A stretch of 64,000 nucleotides of DNA, taken from assembly GCF_009834535.1 (NCBI RefSeq), contig NC_045716.1, positions 25,668,001 through 25,732,000 on the forward strand, written 5' to 3'. The number at the start of each line of letters is the position of its first letter. The stretch's first letter is position 1. A program made the position numbers and the translations under genes. Source of the stretch: Camelus ferus (taxonomy: Eukaryota). Positions 5,655-58,584 of the stretch are shown here, one piece after another. Below the pieces are notes generated by a model. That model ran no database searches and was not told where the DNA came from. It worked only from the letters and a program-made list of their open reading frames with translations.

Positions 5655-7146
5655 ATGCTGCACACCGAGGGCCACGCTCTTCTTCGGGCCGTGGGTCAGG
5701 GTAAGCTACGCTTGGCCCGTTTGCTTCTGGAGGGGGGCGCCTACGTGAATGAGGGTGATGCCCAAGGGGAGACTGCGCTAATGGCGGCCTGTCGGGCCCG
5801 CTACGACGACCCCCAGAACAAGGCGCGCATGGTACGCTACCTCCTGGAAGCAAGGCGCGGACCCCAACATCGCAGATCGCCTAGGACGCACGGCCCTCAT
5901 GCACGCTTGCGCGGGCGGTGGGGGCGCCGCCGTGGCCTCTCTGCTTCTTGCCCATGGCGCAGACCCCTCAGTCCGAGATCACGCGGGCGCCTCGGCGCTT
6001 GTCCACGCCCTGGACCGCGGGGATCGCGAGACCCTTGCCACGCTGCTGGACGCCTGTAAGGCCAAAGGCACGGAGGTCATCATCATCACCACCGACACCT
6101 CGCCCTCGGGCACCAAGAAGACCCGGCAGTATCTCAATTCCCCACCGTCCCCGGGGGTAGAGGACCCAGCTCCCGCTCCTCCTAGCCCAGGGGTCTGCAC
6201 GTCGCCTTCGGAAATCCAGCTGCAGACTGCAGGAGGAGGAGGACGGGGGTTGCTATCCCCTCGCGCCCAGGAAGAAGAGGAGAAGCGGGACGTATTTGAA
6301 TTCCCTCTTCCTAAACCCCCCGATGACCCCTCCCCTTCTGAGCCACTCCCCAAACCACCCCGTCATCCTCCAAAACCACTCAAAAGGCTCAACTCCGAGC
6401 CCTGGGGCCTAGTTGCGCCTCCTCAACCAGTCCCACCCGCCGAAGGGAGGCCGGGGATCGAGCGCCTGACCGCCGAATTCAACGGCCTGACCCTGACAGG
6501 TCGACCGCGTCTTTCCAGACGTCACAGCACTGAAGGCCCAGAGGACCCGCCCCCGTGGGCGGAGAAAGTGACCGGTGGGGGTCCTCTCTCGCGCCGAAAC
6601 ACCGCGCCAGAAGCTCAGGAGTCTGGCCCTCCTTCCGGGCTGAGACAGAAACTGAGCCGCATGGAGCCGGTGGAGCTCGATACCCCCGGAAATCTTTGCC
6701 CCGACTCGCCGGAGTGCAGCCGCTTGTCCCTGGAGCGCCGCCGATACAGCGCCTCCCCGCTGAGCCTCCCTCCAGCTGGCTCGGCTCCCTCCCCGCGCCA
6801 GTCCCAAGAGAGTCTGCCTGGGGCTGTGTCTCCACTCAGCGGGCGGAGGCGGAGTCCAGGGCTGCTGGAGCGGAGGGGCTCGGGGACGTTGCTCCTGGAC
6901 CACATCGCGCAAACGCGGCCTGGTTTCCTGCCCCCGCTCAATGTCAGCCCCCACCCTCCCATCCCCGACATTCGCCCCCAACCCGGAGGTCGGGCGCCTT
7001 CGCTGCCCGCCCCTCCCCAGGCGGGGGCGCCAGGCTCTCCCAGGACCAAGCGCAAGTTGGTGAGGCGCCACTCCATGCAGACTGAGCAGATCCGCCTGCT
7101 AGGGGGCTTCCAGAGTCTAGGCGGGCCTGGGGAGCCCGGCCGCTGA
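5655..7146 (+). CDS. ANKRD34A: Ankyrin repeat domain 34A, single coding exon, interrupted by one extra base at about 5848 (CTG GAA GCA instead of CTG GAG CAA)
   Basis: ORF 5655 (MLHTEGHALLRAVGQGKLRLARLLLEGGAYVNEGD...) and ORF 5899-7146 (MHACAGGGGAAVASLLLAHGADPS...GGPGEPGR*) join into one 496-aa protein with the ankyrin motif LLEQGADPNIADRLGRTALMHAC if one A is removed. Confidence 0.95.
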
Positions 7147-9299: not shown

Positions 9300-26180
<16,881 letters not shown>

Positions 26181-28121
26181 NNNNNNNNNNNNNNNNNNNN
26201 NNNNCTCCCCAGGCCCTTTTTTATATGTCCTTTCTAAAACTTAGTGTGATTCCTGTACATACTTTCTCAACTTTATACTTTAAAATACAGAATATATATG
26301 TGTATGTATGTATAAATTCTACACTTGGATTCCTATTTGCTAAGAGATCATTTTTCTTACTTCTAGTTTTGGGATGTAGTTGCATTTGAAACATCTCCGT
26401 GTCGCTTGACAAACAGAGCAGGCTGTCTTTGGAGCTTTGTTGGCTCTTACACTCCCAGTAACTCTGTAGTCATTTTAACAGCGCAAAATGATTGACTGTG
26501 TTCATGTTTCCTTCTTTTCAAATAACAGGGAGCTTGAATAAGGACTGTGTGCCCCACCCTAACCCTCATTCTTCCTTTCTCTTGGACCCAATGGGGCATG
26601 AAAATGAAGACTTTGGCTTTGGCTTATCTTAAGCTGGGCCTATGTGGTACCAAGCTGTTCCTCCAGTAACCAGATATTTCATAGCCTACACCACCCTCTC
26701 CCCCCTCCCCCCACCACCTTACTCCTCCTCTGCCTCCAGATGGTACTTCATTTTGAGGCTTTCCTTACTTTATTATTTAGAAGGAAGTGAAGATCTGGTT
26801 TCTTATTTTTAAAATTATTGCTGAGAAACTGCCCAGGAATAAGAGAAGACTTATAAATACAACCTGTAGGGGTTTATCATGTAACGCTGCTTCTGGGGCA
26901 CAGGTACCACACCAGCAGTCCAGGTCTCCAGATGTGCTCTGCTGAAGGGGTCAGGATTGAAGCCGCTTATCTTCAGTTTTCCCTTTTCATTCCTCCTCCC
27001 CTCCTTACCTTAGTCAAACCCTGTCTTTAGACATTCCTGCCTGCAAAGATTGGTAGAAGGTAAAACATGTTTCCCTCCTCTCTCTCCTCTCATCATTTTG
27101 CCCTTTGGAAACAGTATCTGTCCAATTTGGTGAGGGCCATGTCCCTCCTATTCCCACGAAGTTGCTGCTGTTTACTACCTTGGATGTACATACCTTAGAT
27201 TCATGTTTTCTCTCTTTTCTTTCCTCTTCCTTTCCTTTGATTATTAGAGCATGAGCTGATCAGGAAAATTAGATGAGACTTTGGCATTATGGCACTTCCT
27301 TATTGGAACCTTGAGAGACTACAGGAAAGGAAAGAGAATCAATGATCAGCTGCTTGTGTTTTTAATACTGTTCTCTTCCCCCACCTCTTTCCTAGGGGAA
27401 ATAGGACAGAAATGATCTGGAGTACAGCGAAAGCATTTCCCTTTGGGAAGTTTTTTTGTGGGTCTCTCTAAAATATATTTCCCCCTTTTTTCTGTAATCT
27501 CCTTTATGCTGTGTTATAGTTCAATGCACTTTCTAAACTGAGTTTGAGAAACTCAATGCTCCTGCAGTTGTACTTCCCATTTAACAATTATGCACTTTGC
27601 TTTTAGAGATAGGTTAGGAAACATGCTACAATTTGCTGTTTTGGATCAGATAGGGAAAAGATGAAAGTTAGCTTTCTTACTTTTGAAATCATCTTGGTGA
27701 CCAGTACTTGTGGGATCAGAGGTAAGGAATCTAGCAGCAATTGTATTAGTGCTTGAAAGAGATGTCCTTGAATTCTCCAAGCCCCATCTCTGTATTCCAT
27801 GAAGCAAATGTAGGGTTTGAGCAGAGGCTCCTACATTAAATAAGACGTGTGTCTATTCAGTCTTTATGGATACTTATAATCCAGAAATCATAAACCCTCT
27901 TTTCTCCTGTGCTCTTTTCTCTGGGAAGTGTTAAGGCATGTGAGTTGTGGGAAGAATTTGTCCTTGCACCCCCTGGATTATTTTTCTCAAATATCTACCA
28001 GTAAGAGCCCAAAGAACTTGAGAAAAATTGTTCCCGTATCTGTCCACTTCTGGTGTTAAAGTTTTACTTACCTTTTTAGTACTTTCTTTGTATTTTATAT
28101 GTACAATTTAATACAATTAAA

Positions 28122-30449: not shown

Positions 30450-32254
<1,805 letters not shown>

Positions 32255-32395
32255 CCCATCTTCTGTTGTTCTGGTGTTCTCTCCAGAGGTTCCATTTGAC
32301 CATGCAGCTTTGGGAAAATAGGGCTGGGGTGGAACTCACTGTGTTTTATATTTAATCTCTTACCCTTTTCTGCTTAGTGTTTCTTTTGAGTTATG

Positions 32396-32401
32396 AATAA
32401 A
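32396..32401 (+). terminator. Proximal RBM8A polyadenylation signal
   Basis: AATAAA about 140 nt after the stop, with a T-rich downstream element. Confidence 0.7.
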
Positions 32402-32698
32402 TGTCCCATTTTTGTTTTCTACATTTAAAATTACTTTCCTGTTCTGACATTGCAAGCTCTGAAGCACTATTTACAGTAAGGTAGTGTGGGTCACTGTGAA
32501 GATACTTCTCCCAGGGACTGAATTCTGTGTGAGTTTCTACAGTAGACATAGTCTCAAGTCTCAGCTGGGGTCAAAGTAGAGACTGCTCAGTATTTCTTTT
32601 TCTTGGAAGCTAAGAGAGCAGGGTAGAAGTCAGATATTCTTGTGATACTAAAGAATAATTATTCTGTTCCTGTGTACTCTGTCCTGAGCAAATGGATG

Positions 32699-35600
32699 TT
32701 ATAGAAATGTCTCTTTTGTTTCTCCTGCCTCTTTTGCTGCCACATTTGCTTGTATTTCCATCTGTCTAAGGGCTTGAATCTCCTGCGGGGGCTTTCTTCC
32801 AGATCCTCCTTCTCTGGAGGAGTCTATACTAAGTTCTTGATGCCCTCTTCGGCAGCCAAGGGTGAAGGCCCCATAGAGGAGAGGATCCAGAGGAGCATTG
32901 AGGAGGCCAAAGAGGAAAAGGATGTGGCTGAGGCTGGGAGGCACTTCATTTAGCATGGTGGGAGAGAACCAGTACCAGAGACCTAGCAGGTAATAAGGTG
33001 TCCAGCAGAGGATGAAGGTCAGCAGGACAAGCAGGGCCAGTCGCAGGGCCCGAAGACGAACACGGGGATGATTGTCTAAGGAGCGGCGGAGGGCAAATTC
33101 ACCGGCAGAGGCTGGGAATTTAGAAAACACACTCAAATTCAGAACCACTCAGCTCCTGAGTTGATGAATGGGCATAAATAGAGCTCTCCCCCTCTACAAG
33201 GAAGAAAATGCTGCATGCCGCCTTTCCCTTCCCAGCCTAGGACGATACACTCTCCTCCCCCCAGGGATTATGATAGACATGCTGGGAAAAAAAAGGTTTC
33301 GATTAAGATGCTGTGTTACATGAAGCTGCCAAGTCTATTTGAAGACGTGCTGGTGTCTAACAGAGGAGAATACTGATCCCTTTTCTCCTTATTCTTGCCC
33401 AGCTAACTCAACTTCAGAGAATGAAGTTAGAATTGAAGGCATTCAATAACATTATGTGTAGCATCAGGTGCTAGAGATATGGGTGGTATTTCACTTTTGG
33501 TTTGATAGATCACTATCAAATAAATGAGGTTAGAAGCAGTAGGGTATGGGTTAGGGCCTGGGGTCTGGGGTCTCACCATGGTTCCCCTTTCTTGTNNNNN
33601 NNNNNNNNNNNNNNNNNNNNNNNNNNNNNNNNNNNNNNNNNNNNNNNNNNNNNNNNNNNNNNNNNNNNNNNNNNNNNNNNNNNNNNNNNNNNNNNNNNNN
33701 NNNNNNNNNNNNNNNNNNNNNNNNNNNNNNNNNNNNNNNNNNNNNNNNNNNNNNNNNNNCTCGGCGGACAGTATGGAACAGGAATAGCTAGAATGGAGTT
33801 GGGGACTGTTAGAGCTGGTTCCCCTTACCCTCCCCACCAGCCTACCCACCAGTTCAGCAGTATCTCCTTCCAGTTCATTCTTAATTCTCTGCAGTGCCGA
33901 GTAATTGTACATCCATGGTGCCATATTTAAAAGTGTAGAAATGTATCTCGAAAATCCCTCTTCCCCTTAGGCTATGTTTGTTAAATCCGGAATTTAAAGA
34001 ATCCTGTCTTCTCAAGGGGTGGGTACAGCTCAGAGGTAGCACATATGCTTACCATGCACGAGGTCCTGGGTTCAATCCCCAGTACCTACATTTAGAACAA
34101 AAAGGAAAAAAAAACCTTGCCCTTTCAAATACTATTCTAACATTGAACTTCATAAAAGGGTATCTACCACCTCACCAACCTTTTGAGCTGAAATGATTTT
34201 CATGATGTGTGTGATTGATTCTGTGAAAACAAGAAATCTTGTATAAAACAGGTGCTGCTAAAGTTTCAGGCCATTTTGCAGCCACTCTGTAAAGTGACCT
34301 TTAGTAATAGTCATATGTACAGTAACTATGATGGTGAAACAATGTTAAATAAAATCTAACATTTTCCAAATGCTGTTGGCTGCCCCTTCCCCTTTTTGGC
34401 AAACTGCTGGGGTTTTGCTTTGAGTCAGTAGGGAGTATTTTTCAGTTGAGAGCTTCAGGTTGACTACCTCAGTTCAGGTAAGGTGGACTGAGTCACTATT
34501 AGTTTGATAGAAGGCAAGCTTTGTAGGTATCAGATTCTTAGATATAAGTCATTTTGGAAAGTGATTTCAGCAAACATGAGGGACTTTTAGGAAAGGTAAA
34601 TAGTATCAGCCACAGACATGCAATTAAATGAACTGCTTGGACTTAGGATCAGGCGATTCTAAGTCAGTTGGGGAGTGGTTTTTCCTCTTCCCCTATCTTG
34701 AGTCCATATATTTTGAGGGTTTTGTTTTGGTGGGGTGGGGGGGGGCGGGTTATAGTACACCTAGAAATACTTGACACCTTGTGAGAAGGAGTTTAAAATA
34801 GGCAGGGCTCCTGGACTCACATTTTGGTCCATGGCCCCACTTCTGCCTCTTCTTTTCTTATCTGATACGCAATTTACCATCGACTGTGGAAACCTTTTCA
34901 GCTACTTCTGATAACTTGGAAACTCGAGTCTATAAAAATAGTTTCTAACTACAACAATGTTCCCTTCACCACACTAACAAAAAAGTTTTTTTTTACTGAC
35001 ACTAATATTTTAAGTGCAACATAAGGGCAGTGCAGAATTTACATAGGAGGATGCTAATGTGGAACCCAAAATAGCACCTTTTGAACCTCAATCATGATGT
35101 TACCAGGTTGCTGTTGAAGCAAATGGAGGTTGCACTATTGTCAGGTTTTCAGACTGCAAGAAAGGATGAAATTCATTTGCTATTCCATTATCTTGTGGCC
35201 TATATATTTCAAGGGATTTAGCCAGTCATATAGCTAGTTGTGGTAGAGCCTAGACTCAAAAAGCAAAAGTAAAACAAGCAAACGTCAAAAACAGGCTTCT
35301 TCCTAACTCCCAGCTCACATCTAAAATTCGCTTCATATAAATTCAACTGTAACTCCTTTTGCATGGAGGCAACAGGCTGCTTTTTAAAACTTGGGGTAGC
35401 AGAGGTCCTGTTTGCAACATACTGTTGGAAGCAATACTTCCTACTTTAGAACTACGGTCAGACTAACTGATAGTTAATTTAAAATATTTAAGGATTTAAG
35501 GGTCAAATCTTAAATCTGGCTCTAGAATGTATTATTCCAGAGGCTGAAATTATAGACTCCGTCCTGACATAACCCTAATCCTTGTCTCAGAGATGCTGCT

Positions 35601-37064
35601 TTACTCCCTCCTCCCAGATAGTGGTAGTGGTTTTGGTTTTGAAAGACTTGCTTTTTTCTAGATTTCTAGTTCATTTTCAGTATTGAGATTTGATTAACTG
35701 GTCCTCAAGTTCAGATGCTCCCCCTTTCCCCCGGTTCTGACACCCACCATAAAGTTAGAGTAAAAAATGGCAAATCTAATTGTCACTCTCTACCTTTTAC
35801 TTTAGAGTCTCCACTGCCCTCAGGATAAACTACAAGCCTAATATTTGTGATCTGGTTCTTCATTCCCCCCAGGGCTCATTATTCACCATTCTCTAGCCCT
35901 CATCTTGAGCTGCAACCACTGTGAGATTGTCTACCCTCTACCCTCCCCAGCAGTCCTGCTTTAACTTGTCTGACTTCCAAGAATCAACTTTTAACGTCTC
36001 TGGGAAGTCAGGAAGCTTTCCCTAACTGTCCAAGAGTGGGTCAGACATCTCCGTTGTTCTTTAGCTCCTTATGCTTAGATTAACGCTCGACTACACACTG
36101 TGTTCTAATTGCATATTAATTTGACTCTGCACTAGTTTAAAAATTTCTTGGAGGCAAGACTTTGTCGCTCTATCCTTGATAGAACTTTTGATTGTACCTA
36201 GGGGATGCACATTATTTTTTGGATTGATGAATGAATGTACCACAAAGTTTTGTCCAAAGTCACTGACTTAACTGTCTTCTTCCCATATATGTTTCCTCCC
36301 TGCCCTAGAGTTCTGCATCTGAAAAAGGTTGGGAGGGAGGATGCAAAAAGGTGGAAGTCAAGTGTAGTAAAATCAAAGGCTCTTTACAAAAATACAAATT
36401 AACACTCGATGATGGTAACTTGCAAAAGAGATAGCAGAGGCTCCCCCGCTGAGGATTAATGGTGACCGCGGCCACGCACACCCCTTGAAACCGAAGGCTC
36501 ATGTTGTATACCCAAATTCTTGTTGAGTCTAGCCGTAAGTGCCGGCAAGTCACTCACCTGGGGCAAGGCAAGCAGGAAACTAAGTCCCCAGGCTGCCCCC
36601 AGAAGTTTCCCTCCAGTTGAGCGGGGTCCAAGCGGGTGGAGTACGGCTGCCTGGCGGTCGAGCCCAATGACCACAGGCAGGAAAGCTGCGGCATACATAG
36701 CCATTAGTTTCAGGAACATGAGTGTCCGACATGCGATATCCCCGGCCAGCCACTGAACAGTGATATTCCAGGTGGCATCTAGAGGCATAACCACAAAAGT
36801 GACCAGTAAGTCGGCAGCTGCTAAATGAGCAAAGAGTCGTCGTACCGGAGAGGGGCGGAGCTGGCTAGGTTGCGGCCGTGTCACTGACCACAGCACAGCC
36901 AGGTTCCCTCCAGCCGAAGAAATAAACAGCACAACGGTCACTCCCACTCGGACCTTGGCTGCAACTGAGAAGGTGGGCAGCTCTGAGCCCTCCACTTCTA
37001 CTCCTGACCCCGCCCAGACCTCCCCTGCTGCTGACCCCGAAGGGGTGCCGTTTCCTGCAGACAT
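32699..37064 (-). CDS. GNRHR2: Type II gonadotropin-releasing hormone receptor (class A GPCR), apparently intact, 376 aa. Coding exons 37064-36558 (507 nt), 33787-33577 (211 nt, 164 nt of it N) and 33111-32699 (413 nt)
   Basis: Exon 1: MSAGNGTP...AADLLVTFVVMPLDATWNITVQW...FLKLMAMY...GLDRQAAV...LALPQ|GTGAGT. Exon 2: TAG|LFLFHTVRR...TRKGNH|GTGAGA. Exon 3: CAG|ASAGEFALRRS...FILCWTPYY...EVPPSLSHIL...NAPLDPLLY plus a cytoplasmic tail. Total 1131 nt, divisible by 3. Confidence 0.9.
34016..34114 (+). mobile_element. tRNA-derived SINE
   Basis: GGGTACAGCTCAGAGGTAG...CATGCACGAGGTCCTGGGTTCAATCCCCAGTACC plus an A-rich tail. Confidence 0.8.
34348..34353 (+). terminator. Candidate distal RBM8A polyadenylation signal
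   Basis: AATAAA at the end of 3'-UTR-like sequence; a further AATAAA at 33519-33524. Confidence 0.4.
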
Positions 37065-37249: not shown

Positions 37250-38200
37250 TCCTGCAGGGAACAGGAATCCGGTGTAGGCTTCTGCTTCCATTGACTTCTT
37301 TAGCGCCCAGAGTCCTGGATTCGTCTGGAGCGTGCGAGTGAGTCAGTGTGTGAACTGACTGGGGTGTTCTGTTGAACGCGCTCCACGGGTGGAGGGAACG
37401 CTATCCTAGCGGCCCCGGCGAGAGCACTGCGGCACCTTCTGGCCCCGCCCGCATCCTGCAAGCCCCGCCCTTGGTCCAGACTATTTAAAGGAAAATGTGC
37501 CTCCGCAGGCGGGCTTAAGAAATAGAGATCATCTGACAAAAGGACGCGCTGATGGAGACGCGCGCAAAAACACGCAGGTGTAGGCCCAGAGACAAGTGCT
37601 GCTCGTTCTGAAATGCCGCTTCAGGGGCCGGCTGCAGGCGCTTTCTTTCCTGATGATGTTTGTCCCTCGCGCGGCACCGTCGGGTCGTCCGGGAGGCGTG
37701 ACTAGGGGCGGGAAGTGGGGCGGGAGCAGATCTGCGGAGCCGGGGCCGCCGCTGTCATGGACGCCTGGGTCCGCTTCAGCGCTCAGAGCCAGGCCCGGGA
37801 GCGGCTGTGTAGGTGCGGCCCGAAGAGGAGTTGGGGGAGGGCGGGCAGGGGAAGAGCCTCGTGAGGCGAGGTCAGGTTCCCACTACGGGGGTCAAAAAGG
37901 GTCAACTCAGGGTACGGGGTCCCGGACGGAACGCGAGGCTCTCTGTTGAGCCGGCTATGAGGCCATGATTCGTTTCTGCCCGCGGGAAAGATGGGAAAAC
38001 TGAGGCACGAGTGGGCCAGCGGGGAGGTCGCTCAGGGTTGCGTGTTGACATGAGACCGACAGTTTCCTCACTGGGCGCCGGTGGGACGAGGAGCGTTCGC
38101 CCCGTGGCGGATAGCGACCTGGACTCTGTCCCCAGGGCTGACGAGGCGCTCCGAAGTTTCCCTGTCCCCTCAGCCTTCTGTCACCCGCGAACTCCTCTGT
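37250..38200. promoter_or_regulatory. CpG island / shared divergent promoter region of GNRHR2 and PEX11B
   Basis: CpG-rich; GC boxes at 37441-37470 and about 37705-37722; TATA-like TATTTAAA at 37482-37489; the two ATGs are about 690 nt apart. Confidence 0.7.
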
Positions 38201-41200
38201 CTCCCCGCCCTGGCTTTTAGTCTCGATTCATCTCAAGGGCCTTGAAAATCTTAGTCCACCTATTCTGAAGAATAATCTGCCCTCCAGCTATCCCCCACTC
38301 CCTCACATATCACAAAGATGCTCACACTGATGTGCTTGTGATGGACCCCCTGCCGCCTTCATTATCCCCTTCAGTCCTCGTCATTGTCAAATCTCTCGTT
38401 TCCTCAGTTCTAGAGAGTGCTCCCCACCCCCTTCTAGGCTCCTTTTTTTTTAATCCTTACGTCTTTCTCTTCCCCTGGCCTGGAGGAGAAACGGTGAGAT
38501 GTGGGCATGAAGAGGAGGAGAGGGAAATGTCTCAAACGGGGAAAAGGAGGGGTCCAGGGAGGACTCGCCTTTTGGAGGACACTTTTGAGAGGGAGGTTAG
38601 GGAGGCCTCCACCTTACCTTACCTGTCCTCTCTCTCCTCCAGGGCTGCCCAGTATGCTTGCTCCCTTCTTGGCCATGCTCTACAGAAACATGGGGCCAGT
38701 CCTGAGTTACAGAAACAGATTCGACAACTGGAGGGCCATCTGAGCCTAGGAAGAAAGCGTAAGTAACTGTGCCTTTCCTTTTATTAATCCAACACTTCCT
38801 CCATCCCCAGCTTTTCTTCCTTAGCCCCTCCGTCCTGTTTTTGACCTTCTCTGCCGGTTCTTCTCCCTCATTTCCTCTGCACTTACTCTCTGCATGCCTC
38901 CTGACCGGGACAAGAGAGCAGGGGTAAGAGTAATGAAGGATTAGAAAGAATGGGGCAAATTTGAGAAAACTAACCTGGGACACAAATTGACTAAATCTTG
39001 AAGTAAAATAGAATGAACTCTTTCTGCACTTAAAATTGTTTGTTATTGTTTTTTATCACTTGCTCGACTTTCACCCTCTTGCGCTCTCTCTTTCTCTGTG
39101 TCTTGCTCTCTATTTGCCTCTCTGCTTTCCCAAATCCTTGCTTTTCTTTGCTAACCTCCGCAAGTCCTACGCCTCGGTAACTCGGCAGATGCCCTTGAGT
39201 CAGCCAAACGAGNNNNNNNNNNNNNNNNNNNNNNNNNNNNNNNNNNNNNNNNNNNNNNNNNNNNNNNNNNNNNNNNNNNNNNNNNNNNNNNNNNNNNNNN
39301 NNNNNNNNNNNNNNNNNNNNNNNNNNNNNNNNNNNNNNNNNNNNNNNNNNNNNNNNNNNNNNNNNNNNNNNNNNNNNNNNNNNNNNNNNNNNCCTTTTGT
39401 ATTCTCCATACTGCATAGCTGGCCTTTTATGAAAGAACAGTCTCTCAGGGGCTTCTCTGAGAATATACACATCTTAATCACTTGGCTTCCAATCTTCATT
39501 TAGATCTTAAACTATCAGAGAATAATGAATAGGGGAAGATGGAAGACAGATGCTCTTCCATGATGAATGACTAAGATCGGGCAAGATTAGATATTAATTC
39601 TATTTCTTTAATTCTGCGTCTGTCTGTACCACAGGTTATGCCCCTCATTGCCTGCTCATTCATTCATTCTAAAAATATTTAGTAGGTTCTTGCTGTGAGC
39701 CAGGGAATACAGCAAAGGGCCAAACAGTTATGGTTCCTGCTCTCATGAAGCTTCTAGTCTAGTGGAGGAGTCAGGGATTAAGACAAATAATCACCAAACC
39801 AAATATTTGTGGGGAAGTACACGATGTTATGAGATATATAACACGGGGAACTAATTTAGATTGAAAAGTCAAGGAAGAATTCTTTGAGAAAATTAAATTT
39901 GTTTCAGACTTGAAGTCTGAGTAGAAGTTATACAAAGCAAACAGTAGCAGAGAAGATCTTCCCAAACAGAAAATAGCACACTTTGAGGACTGAGCCAAGA
40001 AAGACTTCATGGAATTAGAGAAATAGAAAGAAAACCAGTGTGATGGACTTAAGGCTAAAAGTTCAAACTGGAGAGGCAGACAGGGTCCAGGTCATTCATG
40101 CAAAGCCTTGTAGGCAATGGTAAGGGTTTTTTTTTTTTTGTTTAAATTTTATCCTAAGTACAGTGGGTTCTGAGCAGAGATGTGACATAATTCAAATTGT
40201 GTTCAAAAAAGATCTCTCATGCTGTAGTGTGGAAAATGGATTGCTGTAGGGCAAAAGAGGAGGAGATGCCCTAATGTGGTCAAGAGATGATGTTGGCTTG
40301 GACTGAGGAGCAGGCTGGTGATGAAAGTGGAAAGAATCATGATTTGGGAGTTAAATGATCTGTATACATATCATCTGTATTGGTTTTTTGTTCTCCAATG
40401 ATTCTTTGTCATTTTACATTAGCATCTTTCCTTCTACATTTATGTCTTGCTTTTCTCTTCATCTTTATCATTTATATTTATAACATGGCTTAGGATGTAT
40501 GAGGGGTGGGAGTGGAGGCATGGCTGGAGTGGTATGGAGAAACAACTCCCCAGAAGGGTTTATATGCCATGTTTATTCATTTTATTCAATAAATATTTAT
40601 AGAGCTCTTAGTATGTGCCGAGCACTGGTCTAGACACAGTGCTAAAGACAAACAAGATCCCTGCTCCAGTGGTGCTTACATTGTAACAGTAAGAGCAAAG
40701 AAACAATAAATGAGAAAAATGACAGAGAGTGGTAAATGCAATACAGGAAGTTAAAATAAGGTCATGTGGTAGACAGTAAATGGCTCGCTACTTTAGAATT
40801 GGGAGGTCGGAGAATACATCCCTAAAGAGATAATATTTATTTATTTATTTATTTATTTTAATTGAAATATAGTTGATTTACAATGTTGTGTTAGTTTCTG
40901 GTGTATAGCAAAGTGATTCAGAGATATATATATAAATTTTTTTCTTTTTCATGTTCTTTTCCATTATGGTATATTACAAGATATTGAATATAGTTCCCTG
41001 TGCTATACAGTAGGACCTCGTTGTTTATTTTATATACAGTAGTTTATATCTGCTAATCTCATACTCCTAATATGGCCCTCCCCCACACCCCTCTCCTTTG
41101 GTAACTATCAGTTTGTTTTCTGTGAATCTATTTCTGTTTTGTAAATAAGTTCATTTGTGTCATATTTTAGATCCCACATATAAGTGATATCATATGATAC

Positions 41201-42781
41201 TTGTCTTTCTCTGGCTTACTTCGCTTAGTGTGATAAGNNNNNNNNNNNNNNNNNNNNNNNNNNNNNNNNNNNNNNNNNNNNNNNNNNNNNNNNNNNNNNN
41301 NNNNNNNNNNNNNNNNNNNNNNNNNNNNNNNNNNNNNNNNNNNNNNNNNNNNNNNNNNNNNNNNNNNNNNNNNNNNNNATTTAAGCTCAAACCTGAAGTG
41401 CAAGGAAGAACCAGCCATGAGAAGATTTTGGAGGGAGAATATTTCAGGTTGAGGGAGTATGTGGTATAAAGTTTCTAAAACAGAAACGAGCTTAATAGGA
41501 TCAAAATACAGAAAGAACCTAATGTGTTTGGAGCATAGCGATTAAGGGAAAGCATGGTACAAGATGAAGTTAGAGAGACAGAGTCAGATGTTGAGTTCTA
41601 TATGCCTGCCTAAAGTAGTTTATTCTAAATGTGGTAGGGAGGAAACCTTGGAGAGTTTTAAGAAAGGGAATAATGATGTGATTTATGTTTATGCCAGCTA
41701 CTGTATGAGATTAGATTGTTGGGAGTGGGGAGCAAGTGTGGCTGTGGAGAAACCAGTTAAAAGACTAAAGTAGTAGTTCAAGGAAGAGATGATGGTGGCT
41801 CAGACTGTGGTGGTGGAGTATAAAAGATAGATGTGGTCAGAGTCAGGATACGTTTTAGAGTTAGGACAATTATATTGAATACAGACCACTGTTGTCAGAA
41901 TGGATTAAAAATAAAAAAGACATAGACTGTTCTTAAGGAATTTATAATCCAACTCATTTGGCAAGGTGGGCTTAGCTTTTTTTTTTCTTTTAATGGAAGG
42001 ATTGGATTTAAATGGTCTATACATCTGAGTCTTTGAAACAACTGAAGCTGTTCTTTTAAAATAAATTTGCATTGTTATAGTTCAAGTTGAATGTGTGTGC
42101 ACTAATGGGTTGCCAAGTGGAAAAGTGAAATTTGAGGTTGATCTTGGAATATTTCATGACTCATGAATTTTAAGCGAGGATCTTAAGGTGCACATAAATC
42201 CCATTAGTTACAGAAAGGTGGAAGGCCATTTGTGAGAGTGGGCAATAACATTCCCTTCTGGTATTCTAATGTGTAATCCTTTTGCACTATGGGGGGAAAA
42301 AAGAAGTGTAAGTGTTCTGTTGGATGTAAGTAGGTATACGTACCCTTACTGACTCTACTGCCCTGTGTATCCCAGGTATTATCTGTTTTCCCTCATCATG
42401 AATTTGAGCCGTGATGCTTATGAGATTCGCCTCCTGATGGAACAAGAGTCTTCAGCTTGTAGCCGGCGACTGAAGGGCTCTGGAGGAGGAGTCCCAGGAG
42501 GAATTGAAACTGGGGGAGCTGGGAGTCCAGGAACTCCAGGAGGAAGCCTGCCCCAAGTAGCTCTGAAGCTTCGACTCCGAGTCCTGCTCCTGGCTCGGGT
42601 CCTTCGAGGTCATCCCCCTCTTCTGCTCGATGTGGTCAGAAATGCCTGCGATCTCTTCATTCCACTGGACAAGCTAGGCCTCTGGCACTGTGGCCCTGGG
42701 ATTGTGGGGTTTTGTGGCCTTGTGTCCTCCATCCTGTCTATTCTCACCCTAATCTGCCCTTGGCTACGACTCAAGCCTTGA
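37757..42781 (+). CDS. PEX11B: Peroxisomal biogenesis factor 11 beta. Exons 37757-37812, 38643-38758, 39165-(donor inside N-gap 39213-39392) and 42376-42781
   Basis: [18 protein letters not shown]|[18 protein letters not shown]...LSLGRK|[16 protein letters not shown]...|[21 protein letters not shown]...glycine-rich loop...[10 protein letters not shown]; phases consistent. Confidence 0.96.
40836..41237 (-). mobile_element. L1 3' end running into N-gap 41238-41378
   Basis: (TTTA)n tail, ttgatttacaatgttgtgttagtttctgg, tagatcccacatataagtgatatcatatgatacttgtctttctct. Confidence 0.8.
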
Positions 42782-47400: not shown

Positions 47401-50400
47401 CCACCCAGATGCCTTTCCTCATATTCCCCGCTCCTCCAGCACCTCCAGTCTTCAGTATCTTCTCAGTTGCTGCCTCCTTTGCTTCCCCACCAGCAGAACT
47501 GACCCTCTTTTGTTCTCCAGCAGCAGAGTGGTGCTATGTTTCTACCTAGCACTTAATTCCTTCTTCTCTGTTTTTTAGTAAATTGTATGTGTGCTCATCT
47601 TCTCTTTTACCTATTTCTTTTTTTTTTAACATTTTTTATTGATTTATAATCATTTTACAATGTTGTGTCAAATTCCAGTGTTCAGCACTATTTTTCAGTC
47701 ATTCATAGACATATACACACTCATTGTCACATTTTTTTCTCTGTGAGTTATCATAACATTTTGTATATATTTCCCTGTGCTATACAGTGTAATCTTGTTT
47801 ATCTATTCTACAATTTTGAAATCCCAGTCTATCCCTTCCCACCCTCCACCCACCCTGGCAACCACAAGTCTGTATTCTCTGTCTATGAGTCTATTTCTGT
47901 CCTGTATTTACGCTTTGTTTTTGTTTGTTTGTTTGTTTCTTTTACCTATTTCTGTATTTACCCAGGACCTGGCACACTACCTTCCTTGCATGTAAGAAGT
48001 GCCTAATAAATGTTTGAATTGAACGTGCCTTCCTGTGACCTCTTCCCCTGTCACCCCCATGCCCAGTATCCCCTGCCCCTCTGTTCCTCATCACCACGCC
48101 CCTCCTCCTAGGCTGCCCCACCTACATGGATGTCGTCATTGTCTTGGATGGCTCCAACAGCATCTATCCCTGGTCTGAAGTTCAGACCTTCCTACGAAGA
48201 CTGGTAGGGAGATTGTTTATTGACCCGGAGCAGATACAGGTAAGAGAAGGCAATACAGATGGACTTGGAGGGGGAGAGACAGGGAGAGAGGAGGAAGATG
48301 TGGACAGTAGCTTCAGTAGTATCCAGGTGCCCATCTCCCCTCCCTCACATACCTTCTTCTGCCACCCCCACCCCCTGCGCCCCCCGCACATCCCATTCCA
48401 ACGTGCACACTGCATTCTCAGGTCGGGCTGGTACAGTATGGAGAGAGCTCTGTACACGAGTGGTCCCTGGGGGATTTCCGAACCAAAGAAGAAGTGGTGA
48501 GAGCAGCAAGGAACCTGAGCCGACGAGAGGGGCGAGAAACAAAGACTGCTGAAGCAATCACGGTGGCCTGGTGAGGCACTGGGAGGGGGAGCGTGGGAGG
48601 CGAGTGGGAGGGTCTAGAAGGGTTAGAGGCGGGTTTGGAGTGCAGTGTGTACGTCCCAAGGTGTCCTGCAAGCTTATCTTTGTCTGCGCCGGGACGGTGG
48701 GTGGGAGAGGCGAGGCAGGCTGCCCCTGCGCTCCTTCTCCCTGCGTTTCCACAGTGTCTGTGTCTGTGTCTGTCCACATTTCCGCTTCTTGCTCTCTGTA
48801 GACGGAATTCTGTCTGTCTGTACACCCCCATCCCACTTTGACCTTGGCCCTCAGGTTCTCCGCCACTCATGTCCTAGCTCATTCTCCAAACGTGACAAAA
48901 CTCGTCTCCCAGAAGACTTCCCTGGCCTGGCCATTCTTCTCTATTCTACATTCCCTTAATATTTGTCCTTTCAAATACAATATTTGCCGATTGAATCTAT
49001 GAATGTGTGGATTTAAACTTCTTTGGATTGATGATACGCTGCTCCACATGTTCTATGATGTTCAGACATTTGAGCTTGCACTCCGTGCCTTTCTCTGCAC
49101 TAGACAGTTGGAGAGATGGGCTACAGGCAAGAGGCCTGACCTCAGTGGATGGCTGGCAGTGTTAAGTACTGTGTGGGCGTGTATCTGTCTGCATACATCT
49201 CATTGTACTTCAGTCCTCTCTCTTCTTAGCACAGAAGGATTCAGTCAGTCCCGTGGGGGCCGACCAGAGGCTGCCAGGCTACTGGTGGTTGTCACTGATG
49301 GAGAATCACATGATGGAGAGGAGCTCCCCACAGCACTGAAGGCCTGTGAGGCTGGAAGAGTGACACGCTACGGGATAGCTGTGAGAATCAGCTCCAGATC
49401 TGAAAGGACGGCAGCGGGTGGGGGTAGCGACACTGAGGACTGGGAACCTGAGGAACACGGGCATTAACCACTTCCCAGACATCAGCCATGTTTCCCTTTC
49501 TTCTCTTCAGTTGGCTGGGATCTGTACCAGCTCTGACGCTCACTCCGCACAGCCAACAGACCCCATGTTGATCTCTGACCCCAGGTCCTTGGTCACTACC
49601 TCCGGCGGCAGCGAGACCCCAGTGCTTTCCTGCGAGAAATCAGAGCTATTGCCAGTGATCCAGACGAGAGGTTCTTCTTCAATGTCACAGATGAAGCTGC
49701 GCTGACTGATATCGTGGATGCATTAGGGGACCGAATTTTTGGCCTTGAGGGTAATGGTTACCTTGGAGAGGTGGAGGACAGGGTAGGAGAAGCGCTGGGA
49801 TAAAGGTGGGGTTCTAGAAGGAGTTTGGTAGGTCAGGGAGGGAATGGTCTTCTCTTGTATTGCCTCTGTATTTTCTCATGCTCAGGGTCCCACGGAGAAA
49901 ATGAAAGCTCCTTTGGGCTGGAAATGTCTCAGATTGGTTTCTCTACTCATCAGCTAAAGGTTGGACAGACTCTGGCCTCTCCACAACTCCTCTCAACATG
50001 ACTCCTTCCAACCTCTAATTCAGACAACAACCCCAGGGTTCTTCTAGCTTCCTCCCTTAACCAGTGTCCACGCTGACCTTCCCATGCTTTTCTAACTGAC
50101 CAAAGCATGCCCTCAGTGACCCTCTCACTCCCGGAAAGTGTGTTTCTTCTCATTCCCTACTGTCTTTTCAGCAAATCCATCTGGTTCTGCCCTACAGGAT
50201 GGGATTCTCTTTGGGATGGTAGGGGCTTACGACTGGGGGGGGTCAGTGTTATGGCTTGGAGAAGATCACCGCCTCTTCCCGCCACGGACAGCCCTAGAAG
50301 ATGAGTTCCCCCCTGCATTACAGAACCATGCAGCCTACCTGGGTGAGTAGCAGAGAACTGCAAAGGACTAGAGAGGGTGGAGGGGAGGGAGAAAAATGCT

Positions 50401-53400: not shown

Positions 53401-56400
53401 AGCTTAAAGAGGGAGGAGACATGGGACGACAGCAGAATCTGACCTGGGCACCCCCTCTTGTCTTTCCACTTCTCCTCCAGTCCCGTTCCTTCTCCTTGTC
53501 TTCCTCTCAGCCCTCAGCCCTTCTCTCCCCTCTAGGTCCCCTTCTCAAAGGACTGCGGCCCCGACAATGAATGTGTCACAGATCTGGCACTTCGAGCCAG
53601 TATGGACATCAGAGGCTCCAGGTGGGATGGACATGACCTGGCCAAACCAGGGTGACCTGAGACAGACCAGAGGGGGCCTGAAGGGAGACGGAGGGTTGAT
53701 TCTCACCCAGGAAAAGAGAAGTGAGGCTTCTGGCACCCCTCAAGTCTGGGCCCTCCTTTACCCGCCCCTCCTAGGAAGGAGCCCTTTGTGGTTCGGGGTG
53801 GTCGGCGAAAGGTGCTCGTGTCAGCAGCTCTGGAGAACAGGGAGGAAAACGCCTACAACACGAGCCTGAGCCTCAGCTTTTCTAGAAACCTCCATCTGTC
53901 CAGCTTCACTCCTCAGGTGCCCTTGCGGGAGGGAGCTGGGGAGGAGTCGGGGAAGGAGGAGGAAGAAGACTGGGGTGTTGGCTGTGAGGGGCTCTGGGGA
54001 AAGGCTGCATTTAGAAGCTGCAGGCAGGAGAGCAGTGGCAGCCCCAGCTCCAGCCTCCACCCTCGGTGCTCTGCTCTCAGAGGGACAGCGCAGTAAAGGT
54101 GGAATGTGCAGCCCCTTCCCCTCACTCCCGACTCTGCAGCGTGGGGCATCCTGTCTTCCGGTCTGGAGGCAAGGTGAGCTGGGGCCCGGGATGAGAAAGG
54201 GGCTCTGACAGGGGAAGCAAATTTATGGTTACCAGAGGGAAAGGGAGGTGGAAGGGATAAATTAGGAGTTGGAGATGTGCAGATGCTAACTACGGTGTAT
54301 AAAATAGTTAAGTGACAAGTTTCTACTGTATAGCCCAGGGGACTATTTCAAGAAGAAAGAAANNNNNNNNNNNNNNNNNNNNNNNNNNNNNNNNNNNNNN
54401 NNNNNNNNNNNNNNNNNNNNNNNNNNNNNNNNNNNNNNNNNNNNNNNNNNNNNNNNNNNNNNNNNNNNNNNNNNNNNNNNNNNNNNNNNNNNNNNNNNNN
54501 NNNNNNNNNNNNNNNNNNNNNNNNNNNNNNNNNNNNNNNNNNNNNNNTGGAATCTGTGGGGCCTGGCAGTTTAGGGGAGGAGGCACACAATGACTCCTTT
54601 TCCTCTGTAGCGGCCCCATGAAAAGAAATCTCCTGTGACCCCATGTCCCTTGCCCTCAGGTGACCTTTCTTCTGGAGTTTGAGTTTAGCTGCTCCTTCCT
54701 CCTGAGCCAGGTCCTTGTGAGGCTAACTGCTGCCAGGTGAGGACAAGGAGAATTTCCTCCTGGCCCTCTCCTGCTGGGTCTTGGCAGTGGGGAGGTAGGG
54801 GGTGGAGGGGTGGAAACAGCACTGGCTCCTTTACTCCAGAGAGGGGTGCCTGAGACAGGGCTGGGACATGAGCCTCTCCCCCTGACCCTACAGCAACAGC
54901 CTGGAGAGAAACGGAACCCTTCAAGACAACACAGTCCAGACCTCAGCCTACATCCAATATGAGCCTCACCTCCTATTTGCTAGGTACGGCCTAGCTTCCC
55001 GCTGGGACTCCATCCTGACCTCAGATTCATACTCCATTTCCTCCCTCTCCCTCCATGTGCTTCAGCGTTCCTGAACACCAAACCCCTGGGGCTCCTCCAT
55101 CTTTTTGCCCTCAGTCCCACTCATGCTGAAATTTCTCTTTTAAACATCTTACTTCCCTGGGCATGGGTATACCTATACCTCCTAGGCGTAGGGCTTTGCT
55201 GTGCCCTAGGGATTGGAGCTCGGGTGAGGGAAAATGGGATGTGGTCATGAAGTATATGCCAAGTCTATGTCATGTCCCGTTTCTGTCTTCTCTGTGTACC
55301 CCCATCTCTTTATCCATGTGCTGGCCTTGCCTCCCCTGAATCCATGTCTGTGTGCTGATCATGTGCCCCTGCGTCTGTGTCATGGCTGTGACCATGTACT
55401 TCCTGACTTGGTGTCCATGCAGTGAGTCCACTCTGCACCGCTATGAGGTTCACCCACATGGGACCCTCCCAGTGGGCCCTGGCCCCGAATTCAAAACCAC
55501 TCTTAGGGTGAGAAGCTGGAGGGGCCTTGGCATGAGCAGGGGGAGGGGGGGAGTCCTTGGGGAAGTGACGGAAGCATCTCTTGTAGATTTCAGTGGTATC
55601 CAGGGTAAAGGGAACAGATAAGAAGGCTCCTTCTCTATCTCCCACCTCTTCTCATTTCCAATCCTCCTTTTAGGTTCAGAACCTTGGCTGCTATGTGGTC
55701 AGTGGCCTCATCATCTCAGCCCTCCTTCCAGCTGTGGCCCATGGGGGCCATTATTTCCTGTCCCTGTCTCAAGTCATCACTAACAACGTGAGTCTGGGCC
55801 AGGGGCGCATGGAACCCCGCCACCTCGATCTGGTGGACTCACCCAGCTCCCTGTCTGCTGGGTCATTGCTCTCAGGGCTCCTCCTTCCCCGGGAGACCTT
55901 TCTTTCACGCACATAGCTGCCTTGAGAAGAAAGAACGGGATTACCCAGGGAAGAACTGCAGGAGTGTGGGCGGTATGCTCCTGCTTAGCCTGGAGTGGCT
56001 GGCCCTCACCATCGGAGGGTCCCTTAAGTTGGATCTTCCTCTAGGCAAGCTGCACAGTGCAGAACCTGACTGAGCCCCCAGGCCGCCCTGTGCATCCAGA
56101 GGAGCTTCAGGACACAAGCAGGCTGGTACGAGTCACAGAGGGTGAAGAGGGCTTCCAGCATGGGAATGCAGGGGGGAGCTGTGGGGCGGAGGGGGGTCTC
56201 TCTACCCCAAGGTCCTGATCTGTCTCTCTCTTCTGGTAGAACGGGAGCAATGCTCGGTGTCAGGTCGTGAGGTGCCACCTTGGGCGACTGGCAAAGGGGA
56301 CAGAGGTGTCTGTCGGGCTACTGAGGCTGGTTCACAATGAATTTTTCCGGAGGGTAAACTCTTCCTTTCTTACTGCTCTCCCCTTCTGCTCCTATCTGGG

Positions 56401-58584
56401 ACTTTAGCACAGGCTTTTCGGGTAGACCGACTCTGTTCAAGTTCTAGCTTTGTCTCCTTCTACCACAGTTATTTAATTTTTTTAAGCTTCTTTCTCCTTA
56501 TCTCTAAGATAATACCTACTTCATGGGGTTTTTGTAAAGAATAAATTAGTAGGGATATAGCTCAGTGGTAGAGGGCTTGCTTTGCATGTGCGAGGTCCTG
56601 TGTTCAACCCCAGCACCTCTATTAACCAGCCAACCAACCAACCAAACAAACCTAATGACTCCCCCCCAAAAGAAGAATTTAAGAGAAGAGTGAAAAAATG
56701 ATGAACAATGAGATGGACTCACTAGAAGCTAGTTACTATCCTTGTGTTTCTATTTCCCTCCGTTTATCATCGCTTAGTGCTGTATCAATAATCAGTCAAC
56801 ATTTACAGGACACCTAAATTCAATCGACCCATCAAGTACCTACTGTATAAAAGGCCCTGACTTAGGTAGACACTGAGGAGAATATGGCCAACATTTAGCA
56901 CCATGCCTAACTTACTGTGCTGATTTAATACATTGTTGTTAAACGAATGAATAAATAGTTGACATCACATGCAGGGAGGTGCTGGGAAGTGACATTGCAT
57001 AGCTGAAAGGGATCTAGAGTATGAAAGCTCTTTAAAGCTAGGGAGATGAAATTGAACTTAACAGGACAGGCAGGCAGGAGTCGGTGTGATTTCCTGAGCA
57101 CGGAGATGAAATCTTGGTTGTAACAGCTCTTTAGTGCTAGGGGTTTATATTGTGCCTTCCCACGTGCCATCTACTTTGAATAACACAAGATCCCTGGGGT
57201 GTAGGTATGTCTCAGGGAAGTTAGGTCTGACAGACCATCCCTCTCTAAGTCTGGTTCTCTCTTTATCTCCCTTTGGTATCCTTTTAAAAATTCATTTATT
57301 TATTCTTTCAACAAAGATTTGTTGAGAAACTGTGCTAGGTACTTGGGACACATAAATTACTAAGGTACTACCCTTGACCTCAAAAATCTTATAGCTCACT
57401 GCTGAAAGAGAAGTAAAGAGAATATTCTAACCCAGCCCAGGGTGGTGGAGGTTTGGAAAAGACACTTTCCTGCTTCCCAGAGGGGAGGACATCTAAACTT
57501 CAGCCTGAAGGAAGGGTAGGAGTTGAATGAATTTCAAGCTGAGCAAACACAGTACAGGAAGGGTCAGAGGCTTTCCATCTATAACCCTTCCTCTCTTTCC
57601 CCATTGTTCTCCAATCTTTTCCTCTGGTCTGGAGGGTCCTGGGAGCTGCACCTCTCAGCCTCACCCTTGCTATAGGGGTTCTGGGAGCCATATCCCGTGA
57701 TGATGGCTCACTTTAAATGTCTTCTCATCCACAGGCCAAATTCAAGTCTCTAACAGTGGTCAGCACCTTTGAGCTGGGAACTGAGGAGGGGAGTGTCCTG
57801 CGGCTGACTGAAGCCTCCCGTTGGAGTGAGGTAGGTTGGAGACTGAGTTTGAGAGCCGTGAAACTTGTGAGGGTGGGGATGAGATAAGGGCACCTGTGAG
57901 CTTTCTCAGAACAGAGGCATCTTCATTAGGCTGCAGTCAGGGGGTCAGAAGGGAAAAATCAGAATGGTGGGGGTCCCACCGCCTCCCTTCCTACCTCAGT
58001 TTCTTTCCTTTTATTCTCCTGTGTTAAGGTTGGCTTTGCTACAGTGTGGGGCGAGGCTAGCCGGCCCAAAGTGTGCAAGTAAAAAACAACTCTCCTCCCT
58101 GTACAGAGCCTCCTGGAGGTGATTCAGACCCGCCCCGTGCTCCTCTCCCTGTGGGTCCTCGTTGGCAGCATCCTGGGAGGGCTGCTCCTGCTCGCGCTCC
58201 TTGTCTTCTGCCTCTGGAAGGTAAGCCCTGCTCCGGTGAGGAGTCCTGGGCACGGCGCCCACGCGTTAAGGGATCCCTGATTATAGCACCGGAGAACTGG
58301 ATTTGTGCGGGACAGCTAAGCAGGCTGTGGGTGTCATGCCCAGATCGCCTTCACTCTCTTCCGCAAATGTTGGTTGAATTAAACTAAGCCAAATACAATA
58401 AATTTGAACCTCATTTTTGGAAGCAGAACAAAATGGAAGACTTCAGATACATCTCAGGGCTGTTGGCAAGGCCCCTAGGCAGGGCATTTGGCAATGACTC
58501 TTATCTCTTCCTCTATAGCTTGGCTTCTTTACCCGTAAGAAAATCCCCGAGGGAGAAAAAAGAGAAGAGAAACTGGAACAGTGA
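44489..58584 (+). CDS. ITGA10: Integrin alpha-10, 30 coding exons, with a +1 insertion in exon 14 (about 51329)
   Basis: Exons 44489-44540, 46026-46137, 46337-46446, 46649-46740, 46965-47079, 48112-48239, 48422-48570, 49230-49380, 49585-49750, 49886-49959, 50198-50342, 50556-50704, 50918-51061, 51198-51402, 51706-51836, 52249-52415, 52511-52653, 53225-53338, 53536-53621, 53775-53916, 54081-54173, 54660-54736, 54894-54983, 55423-55507, 55674-55787, 56045-56125, 56240-56353, 57735-57830, 58107-58220, 58519-58584. Sum is 3505 nt = 1167 aa + stop + 1 extra nt. Contains a signal peptide, I-domain MIDAS (DGSNS, T, TDGES), FG-GAP Ca-binding motifs ([27 protein letters not shown]), a TM helix and a KLGFFTRK tail. 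Confidence 0.97.
47626..47945 (-). mobile_element. L1 3' end fragment (younger lineage-specific type)
   Basis: Poly-T tail, ttccctgtgctatacagt, ggcaaccacaagtctgtattctctgtctatgagtct. Confidence 0.78.
52943..53073 (-). mobile_element. Full-length tRNA-derived SINE with target-site duplication
   Basis: Reverse complement GGGGAGGGTATAGCTCAGTAGTAGAGTG...GGGTTCAATCC with tail AAATAAATAACCCTAATTACCTCCCCC; flanked by AAATGT(C/A)ATAGTCTT at 52928-52942 and 53074-53088. Confidence 0.88.
54209..54362 (+). mobile_element. L1 3' fragment adjoining N-gap 54363-54547
   Basis: atttatggttaccagagggaaagg...gggataaattaggagtt...ctactgtatagcccaggg. Confidence 0.7.
56549..56671 (+). mobile_element. tRNA-derived SINE
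   Basis: GGGATATAGCTCAGTGGTAGAG...GGTCCTGTGTTCAACCCC with (AACC)n and the same CCTAATGACTCCCCCC tail type as the 52943 copy. Confidence 0.82.

Follow-up and report, generated by a model that had tools for sequence, protein, structure and literature searches.

The question raised by this stretch of DNA is whether camels have kept an intact gene for the type II receptor of gonadotropin-releasing hormone (GnRH), GNRHR2. A usable type II GnRH receptor is accepted in few mammals; the working models are the pig and some monkeys, and losses of the receptor are known from human, ruminants, horse, dog, mouse and rat. The whole stretch analyzed, 64,000 nucleotides (nt) long and referred to below as the window, contains a gene that reads as a single-copy GNRHR2 orthologue of a Bactrian-lineage camel, with three exons predicted to encode a tailed type II receptor of the rhodopsin family with 376 residues. 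We put the probability of this reading at roughly 0.7. The open readable frames, the ratio of nonsynonymous to synonymous substitution rates (dN/dS, or omega), the constraint on exon 1 and the retention of 240 of 243 invariant alignment columns indicate that the camel gene is very probably intact and under selection. An earlier reading of the same letters (the original prediction) had arrived at an intact-looking GNRHR2 in a camelid, and this part of its interpretation stands, but the working GnRH-II/GnRHR-II axis that it proposed goes beyond the data.

All coordinates are positions in the window, and GNRHR2 was read on the minus strand. The elements of the gene are as follows.

36558 to 37064, minus strand: coding exon 1, 507 nt or 169 codons, from the N-terminus to the end of transmembrane helix (TM) 4, with AADLL, PLDATWN, FLKL and DRQ.
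33788 to 36557, minus strand: intron 1, GT...AG, 2.8 kb, with a tRNA-derived short interspersed element (SINE) inside; splice sites as in alpaca.
33577 to 33787, minus strand: coding exon 2, nominally 211 nt, readable only as LFLFHTVRR (28 nt, 5' end) and as TRKGNH and one base (19 nt, 3' end).
33596 to 33759, no strand: run of 164 N in exon 2; in orthologues this span holds extracellular loop (ECL) 2, TM5 and the start of intracellular loop (ICL) 3.
33112 to 33576, minus strand: intron 2, GTGAGA...CCCAG; splice sites as in alpaca.
32699 to 33111, minus strand: coding exon 3, 413 nt including the stop TAA (32701-32699), with ICL3, TM6, ECL3, TM7 and the C-terminal tail; CWTPYY, VPPS and DPLLY.
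32351 to 32356, minus strand: candidate GNRHR2 polyadenylation signal ATTAAA, from a pattern scan only, 343 nt past the stop and within the predicted 3' untranslated region (UTR) of RBM8A.

The start ATG (37064-37062) has an A at position -3 and is preceded, 18 codons upstream, by an in-frame TAA (37118-37116). The frame of exon 1 is open up to the donor CAG/GTGAGT. Exon 2 begins behind the acceptor TTCTAG, which stands ahead of position 33787, and ends with the 19 readable nt ACAAGAAAGGGGAACCATG, followed by the donor GTGAGA. Exon 3 begins behind the acceptor TCCCAG, ahead of position 33111, and its frame is open in phase from exon 2. The exon junctions are in phase 0 and phase 1, and the four splice sites are all canonical and common to alpaca. 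The minus-strand reading thus bore out the earlier claims that exons 1 and 3 are open between canonical splice sites and that both ends of exon 2 are in phase, the second Arg of LFLFHTVRR being encoded by CGA at 33763-33761. The nominal coding sequence (507 + 211 + 413 nt) amounts to 1131 nt, or 376 codons and a stop, which agrees with the length originally proposed but depends on a length of exactly 164 nt for the N run. The 967 readable nt of this sequence are open, with no stop and no frameshift.

The motifs named in the original prediction (AADLL, PLDATWN, FLKL, DRQ, CWTPYY, VPPS and DPLLY) were all found in the translation, as was the C-terminal tail, which extends for about 55 residues after DPLLYGAF and aligns with the tails of the pig and primate receptors. 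The criteria of the family are an Asp in TM2, an Asp in the DPxxY motif of TM7 and a PPS motif in ECL3; AADLL, DPLLY and EVPPSLSH are present and invariant across the aligned orthologues. The exon 1 product matched the Pfam family 7tm_1 (PF00001) with an E value of 1.4e-18 (67.7 bits, profile positions 1-120) and the exon 3 product with an E value of 1.4e-08 (35 bits, positions 198-260), against a cut-off of 30.5 bits; the central part of the profile corresponds to the span of the N run. The best solved structure was a GnRH receptor for both exon 1 (E = 7.6e-45) and exon 3 (E = 1.9e-36), and the structure of the human type I GnRH receptor (PDB 7br3) scored more weakly (E = 5e-31 and 4e-23, respectively). 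The type I receptor (GNRHR) belongs to the same family and has the exon 1 and exon 3 motifs in common with the camel product, but the similarity is much weaker. The mammalian type I receptor has no cytoplasmic tail, unlike the camel product.

The database search was made with the 219-codon open stretch 37115-36459 and scored on exon 1 only. Its top named matches, from many mammals, were all GnRH-II or type II receptors with 81-99% identity, among them the alpaca GnRH-II receptor model (99%). The 90% cluster of the top match contains models of Vicugna pacos, Camelus ferus, C. dromedarius, C. bactrianus, pig and warthog. Together with the position of the gene between RBM8A and PEX11B, these matches confirm its identification as GNRHR2. 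A camelid-like 202-residue database entry from a short contig (P0001) was considered as transcript evidence and rejected; judging from its length, which equals the 169 codons of exon 1 and 33 codons of intron, it represents unspliced DNA. Intact-looking models were also found by the search in many other mammals, including sloth, tarsier, capuchin, star-nosed mole, golden mole, degu, ferret and kangaroo rat.

Identities of the window product were counted over the 321 residues outside the N run. All 321 are identical in the Camelus ferus GnRH-II receptor (XP_006172806.1 / EPY89977.1 / UniProt S9XHF2, 376 aa), an automatic annotation with the same length, the same single-Glu N-terminus and the same ETKETFL ending, so that the window gene and this model are, by their sequences, in effect one gene. 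An older dromedary model is identical at 320 of 321 residues and has Arg in place of the window's His in DNHPRV. The alpaca receptor (XP_006212503.3, 377 aa) has 98.4% protein identity and the same splice sites; its five amino acid differences from camel are all in ICL3 or the tail, none in a helix, and it has one extra Glu. These residue identities uphold the assignment to a camelid and show the window to come from C. ferus or C. bactrianus, of the Bactrian lineage. The pig GnRHR-II (NP_001001639.1, 377 aa), the best-studied functional type II receptor outside primates, for which expression and signaling data exist (PMC5732264), is identical at 294 of 321 residues, or about 92%. Its locus, taken via the isoform X1 model, has the same neighbors, motifs and tail ending, and its exons measure 510/211/413 nt, as in alpaca, sloth and tarsier, compared with 507/211/413 nt in camel. 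The camel product is one Glu shorter than the pig receptor in the N-terminal ectodomain and carries R153G, R255H and T295N (pig numbering) at positions that are otherwise invariant.

The frame across the N run was approached through the orthologues. Camelid residues in the columns of the run were only counted, and they were replaced by '?' in the alignments. All 17 non-camelid orthologues have 55 residues in these columns, with the flanks in register, and the Camelus ferus 376-aa model also has 55, by count only, with no X. Exon 2 measures 211 nt in seven other mammals, namely alpaca, pig, warthog, sloth, tarsier, capuchin and star-nosed mole, and the exon boundaries of these orthologues agree with those in camel; the lengths follow from the splice junctions that yield the annotated protein in each of them. 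The window and the alpaca locus (L001) run collinearly, with 97-99% identity, and the GNRHR2 reading frame of alpaca is intact over the full 1134 nt. Comparison with another camelid, as the original prediction had suggested for 33596-33759, gave exactly 164 nt between the flanks of the run in alpaca, in frame; this is a comparison of spacing only, and the camel letters remain N. The window carries five N runs of 132-185 nt, of which the following lie outside GNRHR2.

26073 to 26204: N run.
39213 to 39392: N run of 180 N.
41238 to 41378: N run.
54363 to 54547: N run.

Alpaca has exactly 180 nt at the run 39213-39392. Since both runs that were compared match the alpaca length exactly, each N in them probably stands for one real letter, and the runs do not look like scaffold gaps of estimated size. 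The residue counts in orthologues and the alpaca spacing give good support for a frame that is kept across the 164-N run, and the 164 nt beneath it would also be open.

Selection was estimated from a codon alignment in pig coordinates of ten taxa: camel, alpaca, pig, warthog, star-nosed mole, tarsier, capuchin and sloth, together with the broken copies of red deer and plains zebra. A purpose-written GY94/F3x4 branch model was applied on the accepted species tree to the 317 codons outside the N-run span. The omega of the camelid clade was 0.34, which differs from 1 (twice the log-likelihood difference = 9.77, P = 0.0018); against the background omega of 0.27 there was no significant difference (P = 0.52). 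When the codons of the N-run span were added for all taxa except camel, the camelid omega was 0.355 (P = 0.0021), and the camelid stem branch alone had an omega of 0.29 (P = 0.0012). These codon comparisons demonstrate purifying selection at the protein level along the camelid lineage.

For the recent period, the direct comparison of the camel and alpaca sequences is better evidence than omega. Exon 1 differs at 2 of 507 sites, both synonymous. The introns differ at 71 of 3225 sites (2.2%; 59 of 2761 in intron 1 and 12 of 464 in intron 2) and the intergenic DNA toward PEX11B at 13 of 527, indicating that exon 1 has diverged at one fifth of the neutral rate of its flanks since the camel-alpaca split (Poisson P = 0.001). 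Over all readable coding sites, 9 of 967 differ (Fisher P = 0.01). Five of the differences are nonsynonymous, which over about 713 nonsynonymous sites, an approximate count, is about 0.31 times the rate in the introns (Fisher P = 0.006). The comparison of coding insertions and deletions had no power (2.4 expected, 1 observed, in frame).

The columns that are invariant among six intact non-camelid orthologues number 243. Camel keeps 240 of these, and changes were found at 24 in deer and at 16 in zebra. The R153G and T295N changes are common to camel and alpaca, and R255H is specific to the Bactrian lineage. Within the N-run span, alpaca keeps 46 of 46 invariant columns. The two broken copies served as controls.

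Red deer GNRHR2 (locus L009, 4001-8600): a 3-nt and a 1-nt insertion in exon 1, a 2-nt deletion and a 4-nt insertion in exon 2, and a 1-nt insertion in exon 3.
Plains zebra GNRHR2 (locus L008, 1001-5292): a 2-nt insertion in exon 2.

In addition, two in-frame stops interrupt the red deer copy, at codons 225 and 349 in pig numbering. The disrupted genes of human, cattle, sheep, horse and deer have the same locus and exon plan as the camel gene and carry frameshifts and in-frame stops, whereas the readable parts of camel GNRHR2 have no such lesions. The account given with the original prediction of GNRHR2 in human, cattle, sheep, mouse, rat, pig and monkeys agrees with a review, which places the human stop at 'an arginine codon in exon 2' and records that the gene was lost many times in mammals, including ruminants and cetaceans (PMC5732264). 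The broken deer and zebra copies are still annotated as proteins in databases.

The flag 'LOW QUALITY PROTEIN' is attached to newer RefSeq models of 405-406 aa, namely XP_010998010.2, XP_010966535.2/.3 and XP_006212503.2, which come from dromedary, Bactrian camel and, in the last case, an earlier build of alpaca. They match the window product up to ...AGETK apart from isolated single-residue differences, contain no X and have 55 residues in the N-run columns; the receptor core agrees equally well with the clean models of 376/377 aa. The additional residues at their ends, DISITSICSGQ...LLS, come from the DNA of the window itself, translated past the normal TAA in the neighboring frame. The ending ETKETFL before the stop is common to the functional pig receptor and most mammals, and the latest alpaca model (377 aa) is without the label. 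The annotation pipeline has evidently switched frame in the last codons, imitating a primate tail. These models were considered as a sign of a lesion in exon 2, and this was rejected because the difference is confined to the frame of the final codons.

The order of genes in the window is a probable LIX1L, RBM8A, GNRHR2, PEX11B and an integrin with a VWA domain. The neighbors of GNRHR2 are as follows.

About 20195 to 20680, plus strand: LIX1-family exon, probably of LIX1L (Pfam LIX1, 3e-23).
30747 to 32254, plus strand: coding region of RBM8A (Y14), convergent with GNRHR2; exon translations MADVLDLHE..., GWILFVTG... and ...SPDRRRR before the stop.
37750 to 42781, plus strand: PEX11B, head to head with GNRHR2; Pfam PEX11 in the open reading frames 38332-38766 and 42365-42781.
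48126 to 49467, plus strand: integrin alpha I-domain (VWA), probably of ITGA10.

RBM8A adjoins GNRHR2 in 9 of 9 orthologous loci that were fetched, and a gene for a 174-aa protein with RRM_1 occupies its position in alpaca, pig, sloth, tarsier and others. PEX11B adjoins GNRHR2 in eight of the nine loci; none was called in the star-nosed mole locus. By analogy with alpaca, the PEX11B start is about 690-700 nt from the GNRHR2 ATG. These conserved neighbors show that the window holds the true GNRHR2 locus and exclude a retro-copy. The gene order agrees with that of the human GNRHR2 region at 1q21.1. The RBM8A stop is at 32252-32254 and is followed by an AATAAA at 32396 on the plus strand, so that, with ATTAAA at 32356 on the minus strand for GNRHR2, the two genes are predicted to overlap tail to tail at their 3' ends (32335-32420). 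With the further plus-strand AATAAA at 33519 and 34348, the RBM8A 3' UTR could run antisense to GNRHR2 exons 3 and 2. A long RBM8A 3' UTR antisense to GNRHR2 has been reported for human.

Several points weigh against an intact and selected receptor gene, and most of them would fit a young or silent pseudogene, in which the reading frame looks open but the gene is dead. Such a gene might have a lesion in the 164 N, lost promoter activity, a failure of splicing or a disabling missense change such as R153G, R255H or T295N. The N run removes 164 of the 1131 coding nt from view, roughly ECL2 and TM5. The dN/dS check proposed earlier was favorable for the camelid clade, but the camel and alpaca tips alone gave an omega of 0.69, which with about 8 substitutions is indistinguishable from 1 (P = 0.63). 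Five of the seven camel-alpaca differences in exon 3 are nonsynonymous (2 synonymous), all five in ICL3 or the tail. Omega was also significantly below 1 on the tips of the broken deer and zebra copies (0.56), indicating that such a value on a long branch reflects selection in the past and is no proof of present-day function. The three changed residues, the repeated loss of the gene in mammals, including the related ruminants and cetaceans, and the lesions in deer are also in line with a dead gene. The alpaca GnRHR2 is listed as present with '?' for disruption and function (Desaulniers et al. 2017), and a llama study states that GnRH-II was not looked for in the llama brain. However, no stop or frameshift was found in the 967 readable nt of camel or in the alpaca gene, the same-species model has 55 ordinary residues across the N-run span, and the splice sites are canonical in both animals. 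The fivefold slower divergence of exon 1 relative to its flanks and the three changed invariant columns, against 24 and 16 in real pseudogenes, also argue for a living gene. A pseudogene is therefore rather unlikely, though it has to be reckoned with. That the low-quality labels mark a real frameshift damaging the receptor is hardly credible: several camel and alpaca RefSeq models do bear the label at a length of 405-406 aa, but outside the last codons they agree with the window product, and the extra tail, the usual mammalian ending and the removal of the label in alpaca all point to an error of annotation.

The conservation could also have reasons other than a receptor, namely constraint from the RBM8A 3' UTR, from a bidirectional promoter in common with PEX11B or from an antisense RNA role, in which case the open frame would be incidental. 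The overlap of the predicted 3' ends and the distal plus-strand AATAAA signals, which would take the RBM8A 3' UTR across exons 3 and 2, are in favor of this, as is the position of exon 1 in GC-rich DNA about 700 nt from the PEX11B start. However, the conservation is codon-aware, with omega values of 0.29-0.34 that are significantly below 1. The intergenic DNA on the promoter side has diverged at the neutral rate and exon 1 has not, and an open frame of 376 codons with every motif of the family is unexpected from constraint at the RNA level. This explanation is very unlikely, and an intact GNRHR2 kept by selection on its protein is the preferred reading.

Some other features of the window were observed. 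A tRNA-like element at 34019-34090 (plus strand; Rfam tRNA, 33 bits) lies in GNRHR2 intron 1, within the tRNA-derived SINE at about 34040-34130, and ARAGORN reported a tRNA-Cys(GCA)-like element at 56550-56622 (plus strand). An ANKRD34A-like single-exon gene at 5655-7146 (plus strand) has an apparent 1-nt frame break. Its frame opens with the ATG at 5655, contains ankyrin repeats (Pfam Ank, 1.7e-06) and stops at 6059; the repeats go on in the next frame, open to 7146, where YLLEA is followed by GADPNIADRLGRTALMHA. An extra A near 5850 (GCAAGGCGCG) would account for the break, which may be an assembly error or a real lesion.

The camel GNRHR2 is no discovery, as annotated entries for it already exist in RefSeq and UniProt from three camels and alpaca. 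A review lists the gene IDs of camelids with status unknown, and for camel GNRH2 it likewise gives gene IDs only, with status unknown (Desaulniers et al. 2017). Literature searches found no papers on the function of camelid GNRHR2, only the tables of the 2017 review and the llama paper. What is added here, from sequence comparison, is the indirect support for the frame across the N run, the purifying selection in camelids and the explanation of the misleading 'LOW QUALITY PROTEIN' labels on camel models, which are thereby cleared up. The practical value is modest, since the gene was annotated already and intact-looking copies occur in many other mammals.

If the preferred reading is correct, GNRHR2 would be transcribed and spliced in camels. 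From what its family does, the product would be expected to bind GnRH-II and to signal through Gq/11 to inositol trisphosphate (IP3) and Ca2+, and the C-terminal tail would permit rapid desensitization and internalization, comparable to the monkey and pig receptors. By analogy with the pig, a gonadal (Leydig cell) or brain role would be likelier than control of pituitary gonadotropins; the pig receptor acts mainly in the testis (PMC5732264). It is quite improbable that camelids keep a complete and expressed GnRH-II/GnRHR-II system that contributes to their reproductive physiology. If they do, its roles may include testicular steroidogenesis independent of luteinizing hormone, as in the boar, or gating of mating-induced ovulation, triggered by beta-nerve growth factor, or of receptivity, as proposed for the musk shrew. 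In the musk shrew, the GnRH-II system is linked to female reproductive behavior. A tie between camel GNRHR2 and induced ovulation is speculation.

The loss of GNRHR2 in artiodactyls would be placed after the branching of camelids and pig, which is consistent with the broken copy in deer. Camelids would add a livestock lineage whose type II GnRH receptor looks intact and selected, and this gives research on camelid reproduction a small, testable lead. Should a complete system prove to be present, camels would become a second large-animal model for the GnRH-II/GnRHR-II axis.

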